Below are positions 26,376 to 58,410 of a DNA stretch of 64,000 bases, piece after piece (within the stretch, counting starts at the first letter, position 1; each line of letters opens with the position of its first letter). Position numbers and translations under genes: made by a program. The stretch is from positions 841,216,001-841,280,000 of the forward strand of contig NC_091284.1 of the NCBI RefSeq assembly GCF_032444005.1, given 5' to 3'. Below the pieces are notes generated by a model. That model had not been told where the DNA came from. It worked only from the letters and a program-made list of their open reading frames with translations, and made no database searches. This DNA is from Ranitomeya imitator (taxonomy: Eukaryota).

Positions 26376-27586
26376 TACATATAATTTTTCTTCTTTATAA
26401 TATCTTTTATACTTTGTAAACACTGCTTACTTTTTTTTAGAGTAAAATATAAAAGTACTAGCTTGTCTCTCCTTGTTCTATAACAAACTGTCGTGTCCAG
26501 TCACGATATTGTATGAAATATCATATAAGTTTAGTTTCTCTTGTTAGCCCAGGCTGTGGGCTAAAACCCCCCTTCCCTTTCACTCAGGCAAGAGCTTGCC
26601 TTGTCAATGTATGTGGGGGAGTTTTATTGAAGAAAAATATTTAAGACTGGCATAGCTGCAGTGGAAAGTTGTACCAGCTGAAACTGGTCGGAATCCCCTT
26701 TGAAAAACCTGAGGGTCTTTGTTCTAATATGATAAGATATTGGGCCAACAACTTGGGGTAGGAGAATATTGAATACATATTGTTAACGTCCATCGGCGGA
26801 TCTGTCAGCCACTGTAAAAATGAGTTTCTAACTATATCAGGTAAAAAGTAGGGATTTCTCTGTAATTATGCATCACAAATAGGACATATTTGATCTCATT
26901 AGAATGCCAATGTTAATACGAGATGAATGCTGGGTTTGTTATGACTATGACATGTTCTGTAGCGGAGTTACAGGCATTAGACAAATTTAGGTTAAATTTA
27001 GTTAAACTGAAGAGATAGGAGGGTCTGGGAAAACCAGCTCTTTTTGTGATGTCATCAGGTTGAGCTATAAGTCTGCCAGGCACCCCAGCCTGCGGCTGTC
27101 TATCTGCTGGAGCCTATGTGAGACTGACTTGAAGAGCTGTTCCTAACCAGATCCCTGATGCACTGGGACAGATGGAAACTCCACCACTAGCCTGGATGCC
27201 TCACATGATCTAGTGTGATGTGATGTAAGTGTTATTTCTCATTTAACCCCTGTTATTTTTATAATTACTTTGTACATATTTTCAATTGTCTCATATTGTA
27301 ACATCTTTATATAACTGTTTATAAACACCGCCTTAAACCTTTTATGGAGTATAATATTTAATATACTAGATTCGTTCTTCCTGTTCTAAAACGTACCCTA
27401 AGTCTTCTGAAGGGAATTACGCTACTGTTTTGGGTTAGCTTCGGACCCGTTTAAACGAAGCTGGTGGCAGCATATCATGTGCGGGCCTTTGGGTGTCGTT
27501 GTAGTGACTGCGGCGTTGATAATTATTGTTCCTGCCTGAGCGGGAGTAGTCAAATCGCGTCGCTGCAGCGTGCCCAATAGCCAGTA

Positions 27587-27953
27587 ACATAGTAACATAG
27601 TAACATAGTCAGTAAGGCCGAAAAAAGACATTTGTCCATCCAGTTCAGCCTATATTCCATCATAATAAATCCCCAGATCTACGTCCTTCTACAGCACCTA
27701 ATAATTGTATGATACAATATTGTTCTGCTCCAGGAAGACATCCAGGCCTCTCTTGAACCCCTCGACTGAGTTCGCCATCACCACCTCCTCAGGCAAGCAA
27801 TTCCAGATTCTCACTGCCCTAACAGTAAAGAATCCTCTTCTATGTTGGTGGAAAAACCTTCTCTCCTCCAGACGCAAAGAATGCCCCCTTGTGCCCGTCA
27901 CCTTCCTTGGTATAAACAGATCCTCAGCGAGATATTTGTATTGTCCCCTTATA
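27587..27953 (-). mobile_element. 5'-truncated CR1 LINE in the 5' LTR of element B
   Basis: Same family as 2905-3690, with a (CTATGTTA)n tail and TSD CAGTA (27582-86 / 27954-58). It is absent from the 3' LTR (about 41597). Confidence 0.95.
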
Positions 27954-28278
27954 CAGTACATAGCAGGCAGCCTTTCTGGTGATTCATTACCCTAGGTGCA
28001 GTACCTAATCTGACCTAAGAGTAAGGAGGGCACCAGAGAGCTGCAACTTTCAAGTAGTACTGTAAGTGGGATATACATAAATCCCTGCAGTTCGTGGTAT
28101 ATTGAATACAGTAGGATACCTAAAATAAGCCCCTGCAGTAAACTATAGGTCAATAGCCTTGTGTGTATGGAGGGATAACTAAGATAAGCCCCCCTGCACA
28201 TGTGATAGCCGTCTGTTGGCCTAAAGTCACCCCGATCTGTGATGTGGGGGTGGCGGTCACGGTGGAATCGTGACAAAT

Positions 28279-28299
28279 TGGTGGCAAGGCGGTGGGATC
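28279..28299 (+). promoter_or_regulatory. Primer-binding site of element B, complementary to the tRNA-Leu 3' end
   Basis: TGGTGGCA(AG)GCGGTGGGAT versus the reverse complement of vertebrate tRNA-Leu 3' end, TGGTGGCAGCGGTGGGAT; 2-nt insertion. Confidence 0.75.
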
Positions 28300-28310
28300 T
28301 TAGAGCATTA

Positions 28311-29013
28311 AGGTACCTTCACACTCAGCGACGCTCCAGCGATGCCGACAACGATGTCGATCGCTGCAGCGTCGCTGTTTGGTCGCTGTAGCGCTGTCAC
28401 ACAGACAGCTCTCCAGCGACCAACGATGCCGGTAACCAGGGTAAACATCGGGTTACTAAGCCCAGGGCCGCGCTTAGTAAACAGATGTTTACCCTGGTTA
28501 CCAGCGTAAAAGTTAAAAAACAAACACTACATACTTACCTCCCGCTGTCTGTCCCCGGCGCTCTGCTTCCTGCACTGACTGTAAGCACAGCGGCCGGAAA
28601 GCAGAGCGGTGATGTCACCGCTGTGCTTTCCGGCTGGCCGGCGCTCACAGTCAGTGCAGAGAAGCACAGCGCCGGGGACAGACAGCGGGAGGTAAGTATG
28701 TAGTGTTTGTTTCTTTTAACTTTTACGCTGGTAACCAGGGTAAACATCGGGTTACTAAGCGCGGCCCTGCGCTTAGTAACCCGATGTTTACCCTGGTTAC
28801 CAGTGAAAACATCGCTGAATCGGCGTCACACACGCCGATTCAGCGATGTCTGCGGGAGTCCAGCGACCAAATAAAGTTCTGGACTTTCTGCAGCGACCAA
28901 CGACATCACAGCAGGATCCTGATCGCTGCTGCGTGTCAAACTGAACGATATCGCTAGCCAGGACGCTGCAACGTCACGGATCGCTAGCGATATCGTTCAG
29001 TGTGACGGTACCT
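28311..29013. mobile_element. Harbinger-type MITE, strongly palindromic
   Basis: TIRs AGGTACCTTCACACT / AGTGTGACGGTACCT and TTA TSD. Internal GTAACCAGGGTAAACATCGGG hairpins. Confidence 0.9.
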
Positions 29014-29196: not shown

Positions 29197-30679
29197 ATGG
29201 TTGTGCTGGGAGAAACCTTTTATAAGCAGCAGACCAAAGACACCCTTATTGCCTTATGCAGGTCACAGCACATTGACTTTGCTGGCAAAAACAAAGCCCA
29301 ACTGGTCTCAGACCTGGTGCAATGGGAAGCCGCCCTAGACCAAGCCAGGCCACAGAGCCCAGTGGCCGCAGAAGCCAGCACAAGCGAACATGGTGCTGCA
29401 GCAGAGGTCCAACCATTAAATGCCGGCTCTATTAGCATTTAGCGAATTGGACCCCCACCTGCTGGCGGTCTTGAAACTACTCCCCGCCGATGACCGTGAT
29501 GGACGTCGGTAGCTGATCCAGCAACACCAGGAGAGAGCCGAGCGGCAAGCGGAGCGGGAGTACCAGCTGCAGTTAGCTCGACTGCAAATGCAGGGGTCGT
29601 CCCAGTCCAGCCGTGAGCCCAGCAGTGCTCAGACACCGAAGCCCCGGCCTGAGCACTTTCCTGTGATGGAAAAGGATGGGGACTTGGACACTTTTCTGTG
29701 GGCCTTTGAGAAAGCCTGCAGACAGTACGGGCTGCCTGGGGACCAATGGGCACGATACCTGACCCCTGGGCTGAGAGGCAAAGCTCTGGAGGCGTTTGCT
29801 GCCCTCCCTCAAGAACAAGATGGAGACTATGAGGCCATCAAGCAGGCTCTGATAGCCAAGTACCAGCTTACACCCGAGGTGTACCGTAGAAAGTTCCAGA
29901 CCCTCCAACGTGGCCCACACGACAGCTACGGCAATGTGGTGCATGGACTGAGGACCCACTTTATCCAGTGGATCCAAGGACTGTCAGTGACCACCTTTGA
30001 GCAGCTGGGATACCTGATGATCAAAGACCAGTTCTTTCATCTTTGCCCAGCTGGGGTGCGACAGTTCGTGATGGACAGAGAACCCAAAGATGTGACGAAA
30101 TCAGCGCAGATTGCCGATGCCTATGAGGCCAACCGTAGATCGGAAGTGCGGAAACCAGTCACCACCAGCTGGAGAGGGGGTAAGCCTGCAACCAACGCCA
30201 GTACCCCTGCCAGCCAACATACCAGAGGTCCTGTCTCCGCGGCCAACAGCACCAGACCTACCAATGAACCTCGCCAGTGTTTCCACTGCAAGCAGACTGG
30301 TCATATCAGTCCCTACTGTCCAGACAAGCCGAAGAACCCCCCAGCCAAGGCCCCAGGGCCTAATGCAGCAGTTCTTTTAGTGGGTGGTGTGGTTGGGAGG
30401 GTGTGTGACAACGTACAGCACGTCACTGTGGGAGGCCATGTTGCTACAGGCCTCAAGGACATCGGGGCTGAATGAACACTCATCCGACCCGAACTGGCGG
30501 CCCCTGAAGAAATCATTCCGGGGGAAACCCTAACTGTCACTGGGATTGGGGGCATCAGCTGTCCCTTACCGATGGCCCGGGTTTTTATTGATTGGGGTGC
30601 TGGGAGCGGGGTGAAGGAAGTGGGGCTGTTTGATAATTTGCCCACTGATGTTTTGTTGGGGACTGATTTGGGGAGGATG
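29197..30679 (+). pseudogene. Element B gag (SCAN domain, CCHC knuckle) and protease; broken
   Basis: SCAN-like TPEVYRRKF...W...DQFFHLCP..VRQFV...P...A..ADAY; CFHCKQTGHISPYC; degenerate protease motif DIGAE followed by a stop. Confidence 0.9.
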
Positions 30680-33600
30680 TGTTAGGAGTCGAGTTTCCTC
30701 TGCTGCACAGGGGGAATCTCGATCCGTCTCCGCTGCGGTCTCCCATTCCCCTCCAGCCGCAGTGGAGTCTGCTCAGCAGGGACGTCGATCCCAGCGTCTC
30801 GCTCAGTCTGACTCTGTGAGAAGAGTTATTGCTGCTTCTCCAGCTTCTGCCTTTGAAGCCTATTCTGGTCAGCAGCGAGCGGACTTCTCTGGGACTAAGT
30901 CCTTATCTGCACACACTGAGCATGCCCAGGGCAAGATCTCCCGTTGGAGATCGAGGGTCATGTGCTCAGGCTCTGCGGCACATTCCATTGGTCCTCTTGG
31001 CAGGTCCTAGAAGGGCAAAAGTTCTATAGCCATTTCCTGTGCTGCAGCTATATAAACTGTGCATGACCGCACGGCCATGCGCTAGTATTGTCTTACAATT
31101 GATATGTGTGTATGTGTGAGTGCAAGTCGTTCTTGGTTACCCCTTCCCTATTGAATGTCTGTTCGCGGAAGGTGTACGGCTGCTATCTAGCGCCCGACTT
31201 AGCTTACTACACTAAACACACATCACAGCGTCTTGTAGCTGTGCCTGCCAGTACGGCGCCGTGCGCCTGCCTTGCGCTTTCCATACCCAAGTCTGGGTGG
31301 TTAGTGGCGTCCGTTAGTGCGGCATCGCTCGCGCACTTGTGCGCTTATATTTCTGAAGGTTCTCTACACACCCAGTTGCGGTGTTGTGCCAGCAAGGGCC
31401 TAATCGGGCTTCAATCCCTTCTGGGGTTAAGTCCGCTGGCCACTTGCTCGCACTCTAGTGCGGTATTGCGGTCCTGTGAATTAACAGGATCGCTTTCCTC
31501 ACGCTGGGTGAGGTTTAACCCACGCGTGTTTACTTTAGTGTACCGCTATATAGTCTGCAAATTGCTAGCAGCAGGTTCTCACCTGCACGGTGGACCCCGG
31601 ACTGCGAACGCATCTTTGTCACCTGTCTTGGTGCGTTCCGCCAGTCCTAACATAATACTAGCGCCAGGGTCTGGCTAGTAAATGGCAGACGGTCAGCGTC
31701 TACAGCAGTACATCCAGCAGCTGGAGGGTAGGTTGGCGGCTCTCGAGCGCACAACCTCAGCTGTGGACGTTACTGCTGTCGCTGTTCAGGCTGCAAGTGC
31801 AGCTGCAGCCAGTTTGTCCGCTGCTACCCCTGCTCCGACCTTATCCCGTCTCCCGCTTCCAGACAAGTTTGCTGGTGACAGTAAGCCATGTCGGGGATTC
31901 GTGAGCCAGTGCTCCATACATCTCGAGCTGCTGGCTGCACGTTTTCCTACGGAACGGGCGAAAGTGGGATTCATTATATCTCTCTTGTCGGGCAGGGCGT
32001 TGGAGTGGGCAACGCCGCTTTGGGAACGTGGTGATCGTGTGGTGCAGAGTGCTCCTATCTTCCTGGACGCTCTGAGGCAGGTCTTTCTGGGACCTCGTGT
32101 CACCCACGATACCGCGCTCCAATTGTTGGCAATTACTTAGGCTTCGTCCATGGTCAGCCAGTTTGCCATCCTATTCCGGACTCTAGCTTCTGAGCTGGAA
32201 TGGCCGGATAAAGTCCTTATTCCGGTGTTCTGGAAAGGACTGGCAGATCATGTGAAGGACGCCTTGGCCACCAGGGAGATTCCCGCCACACTGGAGGAGC
32301 TTATTACTATAGCTACCCGCATCGATCTCCGTTTTAACGAGCGGAGGTTGGAGCGGACCCAGTGTAGGCAGAGGTTTCGGCTGGCTCCCATCTTTGCCAA
32401 ACCTCTAGAATCTCCTGTTATGGCGTCCGACTCCCATGAGGCCATGGAGGTTTCTCGAGCGGGATCTAGGTCTCAGACCGCTCGAGTACCTGTGCTATGT
32501 AAAAATTGCCAGCAACCGGGACATTTCGCTAATAAATGTCCACGGCGGTCGGGAAAACGATCGCGTCTAGTGTCCATTGGAGGAGGTTCACTGGACACCG
32601 CGGCATTTTCCTCAAAATTGTCCTTTAAAGGGACAATCCTGTTAGGCACATCCACTCTTACAGTAGAGCTTTGTGTGGATTCAGGAGCAGAGGGAAATTT
32701 TATGTCTTCTGCTTTTGCTCAGCGCCACGCAATACCTCTGGCTATGCTAGCCAAACCAGTAACCGTGAGAGTGGTGAATGGGTCGACACTTCCATTACAG
32801 ATCACACATCAGACTGTCCCTTTCACGTTAGCCATGTCCCCATCCCACCAGGAGACTATTTCCCTTCTTGTCCTTCCCGAGGGAATGGATGAGATTCTGT
32901 TGGGAATACCCTGGCTTCGTTTCCACTCCCCACATATTGAGTGGACCTCTGGGAGGATATTGGGTTGGAGTGAATCCTGCAAGGGCAGATGTGTGAAAGA
33001 GTGCGTTCAGGTTTCCACCACTGAGATACCCGCAGATCTCTCTACTCTCCCCAAACACTATTGGTCTTATGCAGACGTCTTTTCCAAAAAAGCCGCGGAG
33101 ACCCTTCCGCCTCACCGTCCCTATGACTGTCCTATAGATCTCTTGCCTGGAGCAGAACCTCCTCGGGGACGTGTCTATCCCCTCTCTCTCCCGGAAACGG
33201 AGGCTATGTCCCAATACATCCAGGAGAATTTGGCAAGAGGATTTATTAGGAAGTCAGTGTCACCAGCTGGGGCAGGGTTCTTCTTCATACAGAAGAAGAA
33301 TGGAGAGTTGCGTCCTTGCATAGACTACAGGGGTCTTAACGCCATCACCGTTAAAAATAAGTACCCGCTGCCCCTGATTTCTGAGCTTTTTGATAGGCTA
33401 CGGGGAGCTAAGGTATTTACCAAATTAGACCTGCGGGGAGCTTATAACCTGATTCGCATTCGTGAGGGGGACGAATGGAAGACGGCGTTTAACACCAGAG
33501 ATGGGCATTATGAGTATCTGGTGATGCCCTTCGGGCTCTGTAATGCCCCAGCCGTTTTCCAAGACTTTGTCAACGACATCTTCCGGGATATGCTTTCCAC

Positions 33601-36600
33601 CTCGGTCGTAGTCTATCTGGATGATATTCTCATCTTCTCTCCAGATATTGACTCCCACCGGAGAGATGTTGGCAGAGTCTTCGACCTCTTACGGGCAAAC
33701 TCTCTTTACGCAAAGTTGGAGAAGTGTGTGTTTGAGCAGGAGTCTTTACCTTTCCTGGGCTATATCATCTCTGCCCAAGGATTGGCTATGGATCCTGCCA
33801 AACTACAGGCTGTGATGGACTGGCAAGAACCCCATTCACTTAAAGCGGTGCAGCGCTTTATGGGGTTCATTAATTATTACCGCCAGTTCATCCCTCATTT
33901 CTCAACTTTGGTAGCTCCCTTGGTAGCCCTCACCAAAAAGGGAGCAAATCCCAAAGTGTGGTCTGAAGAGATCTCCAGGGCCTTTTCTTCTACTAAGTCT
34001 CATTTTGCTAGCGCTCCCATCCTACATCGTCCCGATGTCGATAAGCCGTTTATAATGGAGGTGGATGCCTCTTCCGTTGGTGCTGGAGCAGTCCTCTTCC
34101 AGAAGGATGCTCAAGGTCGGAAGCATCCGTGCTTTTTCTTCTCCAAGACCTTCACACCAGCGGAGAGGAATTATTCCATCGGGGACAGGGAGTTGCTAGC
34201 GATGAAATTGGCTTTCTCTGAGTGGAGACATCTCTTGGAGGGGGCTCGTTTTCCCTTTCAAGTATTTACAGACCATAAAAATTTGCTATATTTGCAAACA
34301 GCCCAGAGGCTAAATTCTCGCCAGGCCAGATGGTCCTTATTCTTCTCCCGATTCCACTTCACCCTCCATTATGTCGCTGGGGAGAAGAACATTCGAGCTG
34401 ATGCTCTTTCTCGCTCTGTTGTGTCATCTGAGGAGGAGGAAGGAGAGCCTCGGCTTATTGTTCCTTCTGAGAGCTTGAGAACCGTGGCTCCGGTGTCGCT
34501 TGAGTCTGTGCCTCCGGGCAAGACTTTTGTGCCCATAAATTTGCGACCGGAGGTTCTCTCTTGGGCTCATTCCTCCAGGGTGGGTGGACACTTTGGGACT
34601 AAAAGGACATCTGAGCTGCTGGCGAGGACGTACTGGTGGCCGCATATGCTGCGAGATGTCAGGGATTACGTTCTGGCGTGTGTCTCATGCGCCAAAAATA
34701 AGTCTCCTCGACAACGGCCGTCTGGGTTACTCTATCCCTTGCCGGTGGCAGACAGGCCCTGGGAGATGGTCGGGATGGACTTTGTAGTGGGTTTGCCCAA
34801 GTCTCGCGGCTGTACCGTCATTTGGGTAATTACCGATCATTTCTCGAAAATGGTGCACTTGGTGCCGCTCCCACGGTTACCTTCTGCACGGGCCTTGGCA
34901 GCGTTGTTCATAAGACACATCTTCCGCCTACACGGCATGCCAGACAAAATTGTCAGTGACCGGGGTCCCCAGTTTGCGTCTCGGTTCTGGAGAGAGCTTT
35001 GTCGTCTTCTCAGCATTGAGTTAAATCTCTCTTCCGCATATCATCCCGAGACGAATGGGTTGGTAGAGAGGGCCAATCAGACTCTGGTCACATATCTGCG
35101 ACATTTTGTTTCTGCCAGGCAGGATGACTGGGTATCTTTATTACCATGGGCAGAGTTCGCCCTTAATAACGCTGTTGCCGATTCCACCGGTCAGACTCCT
35201 TTCCTCCTTAATTACGGCCAGCATCCGCGGGTTCCTGTGCCTATGCCCGTGTCCTCTGCTGACTCCAGGGTGGCAGACTGGGCAGTGGAGGCACGGGACA
35301 TTTGGGACCGCACTCAGGATGCCATTCGGGCCTCGAAGGAGAGAATGAGGTCCTCCGCCGATGCACATCGGCGCCCTGCCCCGGCCTTTGCTCCTGGCGA
35401 CTTGGTGTGGCTCTCCGCCCGTAACATCAGGCTGCGAGTTGAGTCCACTAAGTTTGCTCCTCGCTACTTGGGCCCATTCAAGGTCCTCGAGCAGGTTAAT
35501 CCCGTGGTCTACCGCCTGGCTCTTCCTCCACGCTTGGGTATCACCGACACCTTTCATGTGTCCCTCTTGAAACCCGTATACATGTCCCGGTTTTCCGAGT
35601 CATCTGCCGGGACATCGGGTTCGTCTACGGACGATTACGAGGTGAACGCTATTTTGGGGTGCAAGGTGGTACGCGGCAAAAAGTTTTATTTGGTGGATTG
35701 GAAGGGTTATGGTCCAGAGGACAGGTCTTGGGAGCCTGCTGAAAACATTCGGGCCCCACAGCTCATTGCTGCCTTCGAGCGTAGCGAGGCCCAAGGAGGG
35801 GGGGGCCCTAGGAGGGGGGGTAATGTTATAGGAGTCGAGTTTCCTCTGCTGCACAGGGGGAATCTCGATCCGTCTCCGCTGCGGTCTCCCATTCCCCTCC
35901 AGCCGCAGTGGAGTCTGCTCAGCAGGGACGTCGATCCCAGCGTCTCGCTCAGTCTGACTCTGTGAGAAGAGTTATTGCTGCTTCTCCAGCTTCTGCCTTT
36001 GAAGCCTATTCTGGTCAGCAGCGAGCGGACTTCTCTGGGACTAAGTCCTTATCTGCACACACTGAGCATGCCCAGGGCAAGATCTCCCGTTGGAGATCGA
36101 GGGTCATGTGCTCAGGCTCTGCGGCACATTCCATTGGTCCTCTTGGCAGGTCCTAGAAGGGCAAAAGTTCTATAGCCATTTCCTGTGCTGCAGCTATATA
36201 AACTGTGCATGACCGCACGGCCATGCGCTAGTATTGTCTTACAATTGATATGTGTGTATGTGTGAGTGCAAGTCGTTCTTGGTTACCCCTTCCCTATTGA
36301 ATGTCTGTTCGCGGAAGGTGTACGGCTGCTATCTAGCGCCCGACTTAGCTTACTACACTAAACACACATCACAGCGTCTTGTAGCTGTGCCTGCCAGTAC
36401 GGCGCCGTGCGCCTGCCTTGCGCTTTCCATACCCAAGTCTGGGTGGTTAGTGGCGTCCGTTAGTGCGGCATCGCTCGCGCACTTGTGCGCTTATATTTCT
36501 GAAGGTTCTCTACACACCCAGTTGCGGTGTTGTGCCAGCAAGGGCCTAATCGGGCTTCAATCCCTTCTGGGGTTAAGTCCGCTGGCCACTTGCTCGCACT

Positions 36601-36798
36601 CTAGTGCGGTATTGCGGTCCTGTGAATTAACAGGATCGCTTTCCTCACGCTGGGTGAGGTTTAACCCACGCGTGTTTACTTTAGTGTACCGCTATATAGT
36701 CTGCAAATTGCTAGCAGCAGGTTCTCACCTGCACGGTGGACCCCGGACTGCGAACGCATCTTTGTCACCTGTCTTGGTGCGTTCCGCCAGTCCTAACA
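30680..36798 (+). mobile_element. Young chromovirus (Tf1/sushi-type Gypsy) 'C' nested in B
   Basis: LTRs at 30680-31652 and 35824-36798, with no difference seen apart from a 2-nt insertion near the start. 5-bp TSD GGATG. Purine tract before the 3' LTR. Confidence 0.97.
31682..35965 (+). pseudogene. Element C gag-pol, single frame with one in-frame TAG at 32138-32140
   Basis: Gag (LPDKFAGD...; [14 protein letters not shown]), [34 protein letters not shown] plus D/D/E, GPF, and chromodomain [34 protein letters not shown]. ORFs 31682 and 32150 are in frame. Confidence 0.93.
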
Positions 36799-36803
36799 GG
36801 ATG

Positions 36804-40460: not shown

Positions 40461-43002
40461 ACCTACTGAGGTGCGCATGGAGGCATACCGGGGGGTTCTG
40501 CCTCCGTAGCGCACACCAAAAGGGGGAGGTGTCATGATATTGTATGAAATATCATATAAGTTTAGTTTCTCTTGTTAGCCCAGGCTGTGGGCTAAAACCC
40601 CCTTCCCTTTCACTCAGGCAAGAGCTTGCCTTGTCAATTTATGTGGGGGAGTTATATTGAAGAAAGGTATTTACGACTGGCATAGCTGCAGTTGTACCAG
40701 CTGAAACTGGTCGGAATCCCCCTTTGAAAAACCTGAGGGTCTTTGTTCTAATATGATAAGATATTGGGCCAACAACTTGGGCTAGGAGAATATTGAATAC
40801 ATATTGTTAACATCCATCGGCGGATCTGTCAGCCGCTGTAAACATGAGCTTCTAACTCCATCAGGTAAAAAGTAGGGATTTCTCTGTAATTATGCATCAC
40901 AAATAGGACATATTTGATCTCATTAGAATGCCAATGTTAATACGAGATGAATGCTGGGTTTGATATGACTATGACATGTTCTGTAGCGGAGTTACAGGCA
41001 TTAGACAAATTTAGGTTAAATTTAGATTAAGCTGAAGAGATAGGAGGGTCTGGGAAAACCAGCTCTTTTTGTGATGTCATCAGGTTGAGCTATAAGTCTG
41101 CCAGGCACCCAAGCCTGCGGCTGTCTGTCTGCTGGAGCCTATGTGAGTCTGACTTGAAGAGCTGTTCCTAACCAGAGTCCTGATGCACTGGGACAGATGG
41201 AAACTCCACCACTAGCCTGGTTGACTCACATGATCTGAACACATGTAAGTGTTATTTCTCATTTAACCCCTGTTATTTTTATAATTTCCTTGTACATATT
41301 TTCAATTGTCTCATATTGTAACATCTTTATATAACTGTTTATAAACACTGCCTTAAACCTTTTATGGAGTATAATATTTAGTATACTAGATCCGTTCTTC
41401 CTGTTCTAAAACGTACCCTAAGTCTTCTGAAGGGAATTACGCTACTGTTTTGGGTTAGCTTCGGACCCGTTTAAACGAAGCTGGTGGCAGCATATCATGT
41501 GCGGGCGGGTGTGGGTGTCATTGTAGCGACTGCGGCGTTGATAATTATTGTTCCTGCCTGAGTGGGAGTAGTCAAATCGCAGCGTGCCCAATAGCCAGTA
41601 CATAGCAGGCAGCCTTTCTGGTGACTCATTACCCTAGGTGCAGTACCTAATCTGACCTGAGAGTAAGAGGGGCGCCAGAGAGCTGCAAGTTTCAAGTGGA
41701 ACTGTAAGTGGGATATACATAAATCCCTGCAGTTCGTGGTATATTGAAGAGCAGTGGGATACCTAAAATAAGCCCCTGTAGTAAACTATAGGTCAATAAC
41801 ATTGTGTGTTTTTTCATCACATTGTGGAGTGGAGGGATAACTAAGATAAGCCCCCCTGCACATGTGATAGTCGTCTGTTGGCCTAAAGTCACCCCGATCT
41901 GTGACGTGGGGGTGACGGTCACGGTGGAATCGTGACATGTCCTCTGAAGTGAATTACGCTACTATTCTGGGTTGGCTCTGAACCCGTTAATAATTACGAA
42001 ATCGGAGCTGGTGGCAGTGGATTTGTCCTGTGCGTTTGGGAGGCTTTGTTGCGACTGGCGGCATTGATAATTATTGTTCCCGCCTGAATGGGAGTAGTTA
42101 TATCGCCCTCGCTGCAGGGTGCCCATTAGCCAGTACATAGCAGGCAGCCTTTCTGGCAACTAATTACCCTAGGTGCAGTACCCTGTCTGACCTGAGGGTA
42201 AGGGGGTGCCAGAGAGCTGCAAGTTCTAAACCGGAACTGGGAAGTGGGATATAGATAAATCCCCTTCAGAAAGAACCAGGGGCAACCAAACAACCCCGGT
42301 TCATGACGAATTGGTGTGAGGGGTGGGGATGATAGCGGTATCCTCCCCGGGATCCCTGACATATTGGGATTCGTGACACTGGCCAGGATTTGAGAGGAGA
42401 CTGCAGAGAAGCATACGTGTCCCCCTTTATCGCGGACATATATTGGGGCTGTTAATGCCGCAGCGCACAGCTTTATATACCGTATATGTTTTATATACAG
42501 AATTGGCTTCTTATGTCCCAGCTTTTTGTCGCCATGTTCTAGTGCTCTGGAGCCCAATCTCGGCTCTGCATGGACTCAGCACCGGACACCAGCGGCGTCT
42601 GCAGAATCCCGCACTGGTCGTTTCATCTGCGACTTTCTACAACGCGATCTAATTACAGCTGTGAATGCTCCTGACCATCGCTGCTGCCCGTCACCTCCAT
42701 CCTGGCCTGTGCTGCCGACGTCCATGTGACTCACAACGTGCTGCCGAGGCCTCCGGCACAGCTGGGTCATTTTCTCTGTAGATTCATTATGTTGTGACCA
42801 CAATAACAGTCATTGGAAACTTCTCAGCCATCCTGTCATGTGACCACAGTCGCCCTGAACTGTCACCTGAATAGCGACGGTTAGCTGCCGTGCATTGTGG
42901 GTGATGCTGGCTGTGCGGGACATCAGTACAAATGTCAGACGTGACCTACTTTACATTATGGCGGAAAAGACTAATGAAACACAACTCACTGCCGCTATGA
43001 TT

Positions 43003-43351
43003 ACGTGACTTCTCCAGGTATATGATGACACCAGTAGTGATCCGGTGTGGTGCGGGCACGTGAGTCTCCAGGTATATGATAACATCAGTAGTGATCCGGA
43101 GTGGTGCGGTCACGTCAGTCTCCAGGTGTATGATGACACCAGTAGTGATCCGGTGTGGTGCGGTCACGTGAGTCTCCAGGTGTATGATGACACCAGTAGT
43201 GATCCGGTGTGGTGCGGTCACGTGAGTCTCCAGGTATATGATGACACCAGTAGTGATCCGGTGTTGTGCGGTCACGTGAGTCTCCAGGTATATGATGACA
43301 CTAGTAGTGATCTGGTGTGGTGCGGTCACGTGAGTCTCCAGGTATATGATG
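43003..43351. repeat. 54-bp CpG-rich satellite, left part
   Basis: Unit CCAGGTATATGATGACACCAGTAGTGATCCGGTGTGGTGCGGTCACGTGAGTCT; continues at 57031. Confidence 0.95.
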
Positions 43352-45151
43352 TGTTATGGACCTGGTGGTTAGGAGCACCCGGAACGACCTGATGGTTAAA
43401 CTCTCACAGGACAAGCTCTGGGAAGTGGGAACTCTGCTGACCGCAACCCCTAATCCTATCACACAACTAGAAATAGCCGTGGAGCGTACCTAACTCGGCC
43501 TAGACGCCTCTTCACAGCCTAAGAGCTAACTAGCCCTAGAAATTAGTGTTGAGCATTCCGATACCGCAAGTATCGGGTATCGGCCGATACTTGCGGTATC
43601 GGAATTCCGATACCGAGATCCGATACTTTTGTGGTATCGGGTATCGGTATCAGATACATAGAGATGTGTAAAATAAAGAATTAAAATAAAAAATATTGAT
43701 ATATTTACCTCTCCGGCGGCCCCTGGACTCAGCGTGGGTAACCGGCAGGCTTCGTTGTTCAAAATCAGCGCTTTTAGGACCTGAGAATCACGTCCCGGCT
43801 TCTGATTGGTCGCGGGCCGCCCATGTGACCGCCACGCGACCAATCACAAGCCGCGACGTCACCGCAAGCTATTAGCGCGCTCATTTTTGAAAAATGAGCG
43901 CGTTAATGACTTTCAAAGACGTAGCGGCTTGTGATTGGTCGCGGCCACGCGACCAATCACAAGCCGCGACGTCACCGCAAGCTATTAACGCGCTCATTTT
44001 TAAAAATGAGCGCGTTAATGGCTTTCAAAGACGTAGCGGCTTGTGATTGGTCGCGTGGCCGCGACCAATCACAAGCCGCGACGTCACCGCAAGCTATTAA
44101 CGCGCTCATTTTTAAAAATGAGCGCGTTAATGGCTTTCAAAGACGTAGCGGCTTGTGATTGGTCGCGTGGCCGCGACCAATCACAAGCCGCGACGTCACC
44201 GCAAGCTATTAACGCGCTCATTTTTAAAAATGAGCGCGTTAATGGCTTTCAAAGACGTAGCTGCTTGTGATTGGTCGCGTGGCCGCGACCAATCACAAGC
44301 CGCGACGTCACCGCAAGCTATTAACGCGCTCATTTTTAAAAATGAGCGCGTTAATGACTTTCAAAGACGTAGCTGTTGTGAATTCTGTGGCTGAATTCAC
44401 TCCTGTGGTCACAAGTGGTACTGCAGCTTCTGAGCTTCCTCCCTCAGGTGTTCTGGTGAGCTCGTTAACTGCTTCATTACTTAACTCCGCCTGATGCTGC
44501 TATCCTTGCTCCTTGTCAATGTTTCAGTGTTGGATCTGAGCTTCTCCTGATTGTTCCTGTGACCTGCTGCTCTGTATAGCTAAGTGCTTTTTGCTTTTTT
44601 GTTGCTTTTTTTCTGTCCAGCTTGTCTTTTGTTTTGCTGGAAGCTCTGAGACGCAAAGGGTGTACCGCCGTGCCGTTAGTTCGGCACGGTGGGTTTTTTT
44701 TTGCCCCCTTTGCGTGGTTTTGCTTTAGGGTTTTTTGTAGACTGCAAAGTTCGCTTTACTGTCCTCGCTCTGTCCTAGAATATCGGGCCCCACTTTGCTG
44801 AATCTATTTCATCCCTACGTTTGTCTTTTCATCTTACTCACAGTCATTATATGTGGGGGGCTGCCTTTTCCTTTGGGGAATTTCTCTGGGGCAAGTCAGG
44901 CCTATTTTTCTATCTTCAGGCTAGCTAGTTTCTTAGGCTGTGCCGAGTTGCCTAGGTAGTTGTTAGGCGCAATCCACAGCCGCTTTTAGTTGTGTTTAGG
45001 ATAGGATCAGGTGTGCAGTCTACAGAGTTTCCACGTCTCAGAGCTCGTTCTTGTATTTTTGGGTATTTGTCAGATCACTGTGTGCGCTCTGATCGCTAAG
45101 CACACTGTGTTTCTGGATTGCCTTCATAACACCTGTCATTAGCAAACATAA

Positions 45152-45869
45152 AGGCCCCTTCACATTAAGCGACGCTGCAGCGATACTGACAATGATCCGG
45201 ATCGTTGCAGCGTCGCTGTTTGGTCACTGGAGAGCTGTCACACAGACCGCTCTCCAACGACCAACGATGCCGGTAACCAGGGTAAACATCGGGTAACTAA
45301 GCGCAGGGCCGCGCTTAGTAACCCGATGTTTACCCTGGTTACCATCCTAAAAGTAAAAAAAAACAAACACTAGATACTTACCTACAGCCGTCTGTCCTCC
45401 AGCGCTGTGCTCTGCACTCCTCCTGTACTGTCTGGGAGCCGGAAAGCAGAGCGGTGACATCACCGCTCTGCTTTCCGGCTCACAGCCAGTACAGGAGGAG
45501 TGCAGAGCACAGCGCTGGAGGACAGACAGCGGTAGGTAAGTATCTAGTGTTTGTTTTTTTTTACTTTTAGCATGGTAACCAGGGTAAACATCGGGTTACT
45601 AAGCGCGGCCCTGCGCTTAGTTACCCGATGTTTACCCTGGTTACCAGTGAAGACATCGCTGGATCGGTGTCACACACGCCGATCCAGCGATGTCTCCAGG
45701 GAGTCCAGCGACGAAATAAAGTTCTGGACTTTATTCAGCGACCAACGATCTCCCAGCAGGGGCCTGATCGTTGGTCGCTGTCACACATAACGATTTCATT
45801 AACGATATCGTTGCTACGTCACAAATAGCAACGATATCGTTAACAATATCGTTATGTGTGAAGGTACCT
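45152..45869. mobile_element. Harbinger-type MITE (same family as 28311-29013) at the extreme end of the 5' LTR of E
   Basis: TAA TSD, with TIRs AGGCCCCTTCACA / TGTGAAGGTACCT. It is absent from the 3' LTR (CATAACA). Confidence 0.92.
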
Positions 45870-46012
45870 TAACAGTACAAGGAGCCAACTAATGATTCTC
45901 AATAGAGGGAAAGAAAAAGTTCTGACATCATTTTTTTTTTTTTTTTCTGCTCTGTGTTCACTTTTTTTTTTTTCCCCTAGACATTTGGGTGATTCTGGAC
46001 ACAGGTGTGGAC

Positions 46013-57030: not shown

Positions 57031-58410
57031 ATGATGACACCAGTAGTGATCCGGTGTGGTGCGGTCACGTGAGTCTCCAGGTATATGATGACACCAGTAG
57101 TGATCCGGTGTGGCGCGGTCTCGTGAGTCTCCAGGTGTATGATAACACCAGTAGTGATCCGGTGTGGCGCGGTCTTGTGAGTATCCAGGTGCATGATGAC
57201 ACCAGTAATGATCCGGCGTGGCACGGTCACGTGAGTCTCCAGGTATATGACACCAGTAGTGATCCGGTGTGGCGCGGTCTCGTGAGTCTCCAGCTGTATG
57301 ATGATACCAGTAATGATCCGGTGTGGCGCGGTCACGTGAGTCTCCAGGTGTATGATGACACCAGTAATGATCCGGTGTGGTGCCGTCACGTGAGTCTCCA
57401 GGTGTATGATACCATTAGTAGTGATCCGGTGTGGTCTCGTGAGTCTCCAGGTATATGATGACACCAGTAATGATCCAGTGTGGCGCGGTCACTTGAGTTT
57501 TCAGGTGTATGATGACACCAGTAATGATCCGGTGTGGTCTCGTGAGTCTCCAGGTATATGATGACACCAGTAATGATCCGGTGTGGTGCGGTCACGTGAG
57601 TTTTCAGGTGTATGATGACACCAGTAATGATCCGGTGTGGTGCGGTCACGTGAGTCTCCAGGTGTATGATGACACCAGTAATGATCCGGTGTGGTGCGGT
57701 CACGTGAGTCGCCAGGTGTATGATGACACCAGTAATGATCCGGTGTGGTGCCGTCACGTGAGTCTCCAGGTGTATGATACCATTAGTAGTGATCCGGTGT
57801 GGTCCCGTGAGTCTCCAGGTATATGATGACACCAGTAATGATCCAGTGTGGCGCGGTCACTTGAGTTTTCAGGTGTATGATGACACCAGTAATGATCCGG
57901 TGTGGTCTCGTGAGTTTTCAGGTGTATGATGACACCAGTAATGATCCGGTGTGGTGCGGTCACGTGAGTCTCCAGGTGTATGATGACACCAGTAATGATC
58001 CGGTGTGGTGCGGTCACGTGAGTCGCCAGGTGTATAATGACACCAGTAGTGATCCGGTGTGGTGCGGTCACGTGAGTCTCCAGGTGTATGATACCATTAG
58101 TAGTGATCCGGTGTGGTCTCGTGAGTCTCCAGGTATATGATAACACCAGTAGTGATCCGATGTGGCACGGTCACGTGAGTCTCCAGGTGTATGATACCAT
58201 TAGTAGTGATCCGGTGTGGCGCGGTCACGTGAGTCTCCAGGTGTATGATGACACCAGTAATGATCCGGTGTGGCGCGGTCTCGTGAGTCTCCAGGTGTAT
58301 GATAACACCAATAGTGATCCGGTGTGGTCTCATGAGTCTCCAGGTATATGAAGACACTAGTAGTGATCCGGTGTGGCGTGGTCACGTGAGTCTCCAGGTA
58401 TAGAGGACAC
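57031..58410. repeat. 54-bp satellite, right part
   Basis: Same unit as 43003-43351, with deletion variants. Confidence 0.95.

Follow-up and report, generated by a model that had tools for sequence, protein, structure and literature searches.

How an LTR retrotransposon that lacks a tRNA-type primer-binding site (PBS) might start reverse transcription is the question raised by Element C, a Tf1/sushi-type chromovirus (Ty3/gypsy LTR retrotransposon) at positions 30680-36798 of a 64,000-nt stretch of Ranitomeya imitator DNA. We refer to this whole stretch as the window, and the features of Element C are given on its forward strand. The original prediction was that Element C primes itself in the manner of Tf1, with the 5' end of its own RNA annealing just downstream of the 5' LTR.

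Anatomy and coding content of Element C

LTR-to-LTR alignment and self-BLAST delimited a 5' LTR of 973 nt (TGT...ACA, 30680-31652) and a 3' LTR of 975 nt (35824-36798). The two LTRs are 99.8% identical, and their sole difference comprises 2 nt near the start. The element is flanked by copies of the target-site duplication GGATG at 30675-30679 and, after the 3' LTR, at 36799-36803, beyond which the reading frame of the host element picks up again. A polypurine tract with a 3-nt spacer (35810-35823), read directly from the sequence, precedes the 3' LTR. The insertion looks recent, indeed very young, and the family looks recently active.

The coding content is divided between two open reading frames that share one frame, as judged from the list of open reading frames and Pfam searches. 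The first (31682-32140) encodes the N-terminal part of gag with a DUF4939/RTL-type capsid of the sushi/RTL kind (PF16297, DUF4939/RTL1-8_LDOC, E-value 2.6e-10) and ends at an in-frame stop (32138-32140). The second (32150-35965) includes the remaining gag with its zinc knuckle, followed by pol with protease, RT, RNase H, integrase, Tf2-type SH3 and chromodomain (Pfam E-values from 1e-34 to 1e-5). The gene order is PR-RT-RNaseH-IN with the chromodomain at the C-terminus, and the individual matches include RVT_1 (9e-34), RT_RNaseH (1e-33), Integrase_H2C2 (2e-20), rve (1e-11), SH3_Tf2-1 (4e-21) and Chromo (2e-13). Past the chromodomain the pol frame stays open across the polypurine tract, and its stop is reached only about 140 nt inside the 3' LTR (35824-35965).

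By this domain signature, and by matches that their sources label as Tf2-like, Element C is assigned to the Tf1/sushi group. Its closest protein matches were found in R. imitator itself at 81-94% identity, followed by other dendrobatid frogs at 55-72%; on such sequence matches, the Element C family is specific to dendrobatid frogs. Logan contigs, whose RNA or DNA label is uncertain, matched positions 30600-35800 and point to many copies of the family, with numerous insertion flanks and with variants of subfamilies; they revealed neither transcript starts or ends nor poly(A) tails. At the gag stop, contigs of other copies from three public runs have a different letter, and hence the stop is private to the Element C copy. 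Because of this in-frame stop the copy is non-autonomous, and its mobility would depend on proteins from other copies.

Putative primer motif and primer-binding site

The predicted promoter element of the 5' LTR is a TATA box, TATATAAA (31049-31056), read directly from the sequence. It is followed by the motif GCGCTAGTATT (31079-31089), the first base of which lies exactly 30 nt past the first T of the box, so the coordinates of the original prediction hold. The motif is the perfect reverse complement of AATACTAGCGC (31654-31664), with 11 of 11 positions paired. We take GCGCTAGTATT as the predicted self-primer, that is, the first 10-11 nt of the RNA, and AATACTAGCGC as the putative PBS that pairs with this RNA 5' end. 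In the LTR-to-LTR alignment the 5' LTR ends with ...TAACA at 31652, and therefore one base (T, 31653) separates it from the site, in agreement with the predicted spacing. The claimed lack of a tRNA PBS with a TGG start was also confirmed: no TGG occurs for 19 nt past the 5' LTR, and the first one (31672-31674) is 20 nt away.

A transcription start at G 31079 would use a pyrimidine-purine step (T then G), and a start at exactly this base is probable. The helix between the motif and the site can be extended to 13 pairs via one G.U and one U-A pair. When at most one mismatch was allowed, the PBS itself was the sole place in the 64-kb window that matched its 11-mer; the reverse complement was found once per LTR, at 31079 and at 36225-36235, where the primer motif is repeated in the 3' LTR. 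Mononucleotide shuffles gave a complement of at least 11 nt between the LTR and the first bases after it in 9 of 5000 cases.

Two R. imitator loci, L001 and L002, were fetched as loci of related proteins and represent sister families, with LTRs about 80% identical to that of Element C. Both keep the region from the TATA box to +16, as well as the last ~100 nt of U5 together with the PBS, while the R-U5 interior is mostly replaced or deleted relative to Element C. The 11-bp pairing of L001 is the same as in Element C. In L002 the TATA or TATA-like box lies ~30 nt ahead of the primer motif, and 10 pairs are formed, with a C.T mismatch at position 11. The core kept in relatives consists of 10 bp after a 2-nt spacer (CA + 2 nt + 10 nt), and therefore the 11th pair of Element C and L001 may be extra and perhaps not part of the primer.

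Covariation of putative primer and site in distant families

The comparison was extended to five further families, of which L003, L004a, L005 and L004m come from Ranitomeya and Phyllobates and L006 from an ENA assembly; L008 was left out because its LTR ends are unclear. The pol proteins of the five distant families are 46-57% identical to that of Element C, with L006 at 46%. Each family has a distinct 10-nt site after the LTR that is a perfect complement of a motif in its own LTR, and in every family CA and a spacer of 1-2 nt precede the site.

The position of the motif relative to the promoter is also largely shared. For instance, the TATA box begins exactly 30 nt upstream of GCCCGAGCAA in L004a of Phyllobates terribilis and of GCCTGATTGT in L005 of R. 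variabilis. A TATA-like box was found at about -31 for GCCTTTGCTT in L003 of R. imitator and at -30 for GCCAGATTGT in L006. For GTCGGTGAAA in L004m, the second Phyllobates element, no upstream box was found. In all families the motif starts with G and is preceded by a pyrimidine. Complements of this kind arose in 2-16 of 2000 dinucleotide shuffles per family in the four distant families tested, L006 being left out.

In the comparison of the families, covariation extends to nine of the ten helix columns, and pairing the motif of one family with the site of another yields matches at only 3-6 of 10 positions. The smallest step was observed between L005 and L006, which are one compensated pair apart. 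Altogether, the six families including Element C have one site each; all six sites are different, and every one has its complement within the LTR of the same family. Exactly such covarying pairs of primer and site are predicted by self-priming, and the original reading of Element C as a Tf1-type self-primer thus draws support from its domain content, from the TATA spacing and from covariation in five other families. The signature was present in all five chromovirus families that we sampled in three frog genomes and in the one from the ENA assembly.

Less complete cases were also noted. Within the 64-kb window, Element B has a 9-nt equivalent of the primer/site complement, and a quick scan of Elements D and E returned no complement of at least 8 nt directly after the LTR. 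The Logan contigs L009/L010 have a PBS-type site, and the contig stops 20 nt past a TATA-like box, short of the primer motif.

Folding of the leader

The 622-nt RNA spanning 31079-31700 is predicted to fold with z = -6.1, and both its MFE and its centroid structures are closed by the helix between the 5' end and the PBS. Pair probabilities for this helix in the ensemble fold of the ~620-nt leader are 0.95-1.00. Among the seven leaders folded, the central duplex between 5' end and PBS was predicted in five; in L002 the helix is missing from the MFE fold.

A conserved stem-loop at the end of U5 (31599-31647), 6 nt upstream of the PBS, emerged from the RNAalifold consensus of Element C, L001 and L002. 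It has 18 consensus pairs, two of them with compensatory changes, and is also present in the MFE fold. As modelled, this stem-loop may be the counterpart of the U5-IR stem-loop. In L001 and L002 (about 3925-3935 of these loci) its loop contains AATAAA, unlike in Element C. Neither AATAAA nor ATTAAA, the canonical poly(A) signals, occurs after the predicted start in the Element C LTR (31079-31652).

The flanking duplexes of the 'pretzel' described for Tf1 were sought with RNAduplex by pairing nt 11-50 with the U5 end and the leader body with the 32 nt after the PBS. In most families they were no better than shuffles.

Proposed mechanism of priming

The anatomy, the complementarity, the shuffle statistics, the TATA position, the folding, the conservation, the covariation and the literature lead us to the reading that the Element C family starts reverse transcription by Tf1-type self-priming, which we regard as very likely on sequence grounds. 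Less in keeping with it are the mismatch at position 11 and the missing MFE helix of L002, the lack of AATAAA and ATTAAA past the predicted start, and flanking duplexes that did not exceed shuffles. The transcription start, cleavage and priming that we infer for Element C are drawn by analogy with Tf1. Pol II would start at G 31079, ~30 nt downstream of the TATA box, and the leading 10-11 nt of the transcript would fold back across the 574-nt R-U5 onto 31654-31664. The RNase H of the element would then cut the RNA after about nt 10-11, and the freed 3' end would prime minus-strand DNA into U5. In retroviral replication logic the primer gets copied during PBS regeneration. As a consequence, primer and site stay perfectly matched within each family.

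The rival that survives best accepts a genuine, selected pairing of the 5' end with the post-LTR site, and assigns it another purpose, such as leader closure for packaging or dimerisation or masking of the gag start, with a different true primer. The site abuts the gag ATG (GGCC ATGG) in L003, L004a, L005 and L006, so that the helix could affect translation there, and the leader of Element C is, as noted above, unusually structured. However, the ATG of Element C lies 18 nt further downstream of the site, no alternative PBS is present, and in every family the site lies exactly where a minus-strand primer must anneal. Since self-priming is moreover documented for the group (PMC10085805), we consider another purpose improbable.

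The RNA that anneals at or near 31654-31664 might instead come from the host, as a tRNA, a tRNA half or another small RNA, the LTR complement being incidental; priming by half-tRNAs is indeed known in some copia and gypsy lineages (PMC6317226), and ARAGORN found no tRNA genes in the window or in the five frog loci with which the site could be compared. Such priming is very improbable for Element C. The absence of TGG within 19 nt of the LTR speaks against it, as does the fact that Rfam returned no match in 30600-31800. The family comparison speaks against it too: because the sites differ and each is matched in its own LTR, a fixed host tRNA, tRNA fragment or other host RNA cannot produce the pattern.

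The probability that the complement is a chance match within the 973-nt LTR is close to nil. Although dinucleotide shuffles of Element C yielded a complement of this length in 4 of 2000 cases, the observed one lies exactly 30 nt past a TATA-like site, of which the LTR has only two; this is a further coincidence to be expected about once in a hundred times or more rarely. Five other families moreover have such a complement, each with a sequence of its own, and their covariation makes chance untenable.

Comparison with known self-priming systems

Self-priming as the most probable reading of Element C can be set against the systems in which the mechanism has been described. Tf1 RNA anneals to the PBS through its initial 11 nt and is cleaved by RNase H between nt 11 and 12 (PMC7175516); the Tf1 leader forms a 'pretzel' of three duplexes (PMC10085805). 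Self-priming is common across the Tf1/sushi group, vertebrate members included (PMC10085805, PMC6317226, PMC4600332). For vertebrates two of these papers describe or implicate it, with reference to Lin and Levin 1997 and to Butler et al. 2001 (PMC6317226, PMC4600332). The literature agrees with the earlier statement that Tf1 self-primes and that the same has been proposed for vertebrate Tf1/sushi elements (PMC7175516, PMC10085805, PMC6317226, PMC4600332).

Tf1/Tf2 of Schizosaccharomyces pombe, the founding self-priming chromoviruses, share with Element C a chromodomain integrase, a single gag-pol frame and the lack of a tRNA PBS. In both cases the first 11 nt of the RNA, as predicted here for Element C, complement a site just after a 5' LTR that ends with CA (PMC7175516, PMC10085805). 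Element C differs from Tf1/Tf2 in host and sequence and in its gag of the sushi/RTL type, and its cleavage and priming are predicted ones. With an R-U5 of 574 nt, the helix of Element C would close a very long loop, unlike in Tf1/Tf2. In contrast to Tf1, the two flanking duplexes of the 'pretzel' were not detected above shuffles.

Sushi-ichi and other vertebrate Tf1/sushi elements are, like Element C, vertebrate chromoviruses with RTL/PEG10-type gag (PF16297). For these elements self-priming was deduced from the same complementarity between primer and PBS (Butler et al. 2001, as cited in PMC6317226, PMC4600332 and PMC10085805). What sets Element C apart from them is the restriction of its family to dendrobatid frogs, as far as the protein matches indicate. 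Tj1 of S. japonicus and plant chromoviruses of the Tcn1 clade have also been predicted to self-prime, with an LTR segment complementary to the PBS as in Element C (PMC4600332, PMC6317226), and their hosts differ from that of Element C. In Tj1 gag ends at a programmed stop, whereas the stop of Element C lies inside the capsid region and is the one private to this copy.

Significance for frog retrotransposons

Publications on vertebrate Tf1/sushi elements already describe the mechanism; Element C is a well-supported but ordinary case of it and leaves the known mechanism unchanged. Its family provides a clean amphibian example of Tf1-type self-priming, backed by statistics and covariation. For the annotation of frog genomes it also suggests a simple rule, namely CA, then 1-2 nt, then 10 nt that are complementary to the stretch found 30 nt past a TATA box.

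A broader consequence is far more speculative. Elements primed by tRNA are described as vulnerable to PBS-directed silencing by 3' tRNA fragments (PMC7472051), and a massive, germline-expressed Gypsy content has been reported in a related frog (PMC6278860). The several self-priming gypsy families sampled from giant poison-frog genomes could escape such silencing, because self-primers are independent of a tRNA-complementary PBS, and this might have aided their expansion. The idea, which we rate as unlikely, is prompted by the presence of the signature in all sampled chromovirus families together with the Gypsy reports (PMC6278860).

Neighbouring elements and other loci

An older gypsy element surrounds Element C, which interrupts its protease-coding part. 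The LTR-like repeats of this older element (26500-28275 and 40531-41937) are ~94% identical. In contrast to Element C, it has the ordinary tRNA-type layout, with a TGG site 3 nt past the LTR (28279-28299). The TGG-starting site appears to resemble the 3' end of a tRNA-Leu.

Other features of the window concern the remaining chromovirus copies. Between its LTR and PBS, Element B has an insert of ~720 nt (45152-45872) that is MITE-like and contains internal inverted repeats; it is 84.5% identical to part of the leader of the older gypsy element (28306-28997). Arrays of 54-nt and 112-nt tandem repeats (43003-44444 and 57031-58410) flank chromovirus copies B and D, and the 54-nt arrays on either side are 87-92% alike. 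Masked stretches of N are located within 7627-15920 of the window.

Two arrangements were noted at the loci of distant families. In Phyllobates terribilis (L004, 3225-16262), two chromovirus copies are joined in tandem as LTR-internal-LTR-internal-LTR with the middle LTR shared. In Ranitomeya variabilis (L005, 22000-43226), a higher-order tandem unit of 8.48 kb combines a self-priming chromovirus with satellite units of ~120 nt that are arrayed over ~2.9 kb.
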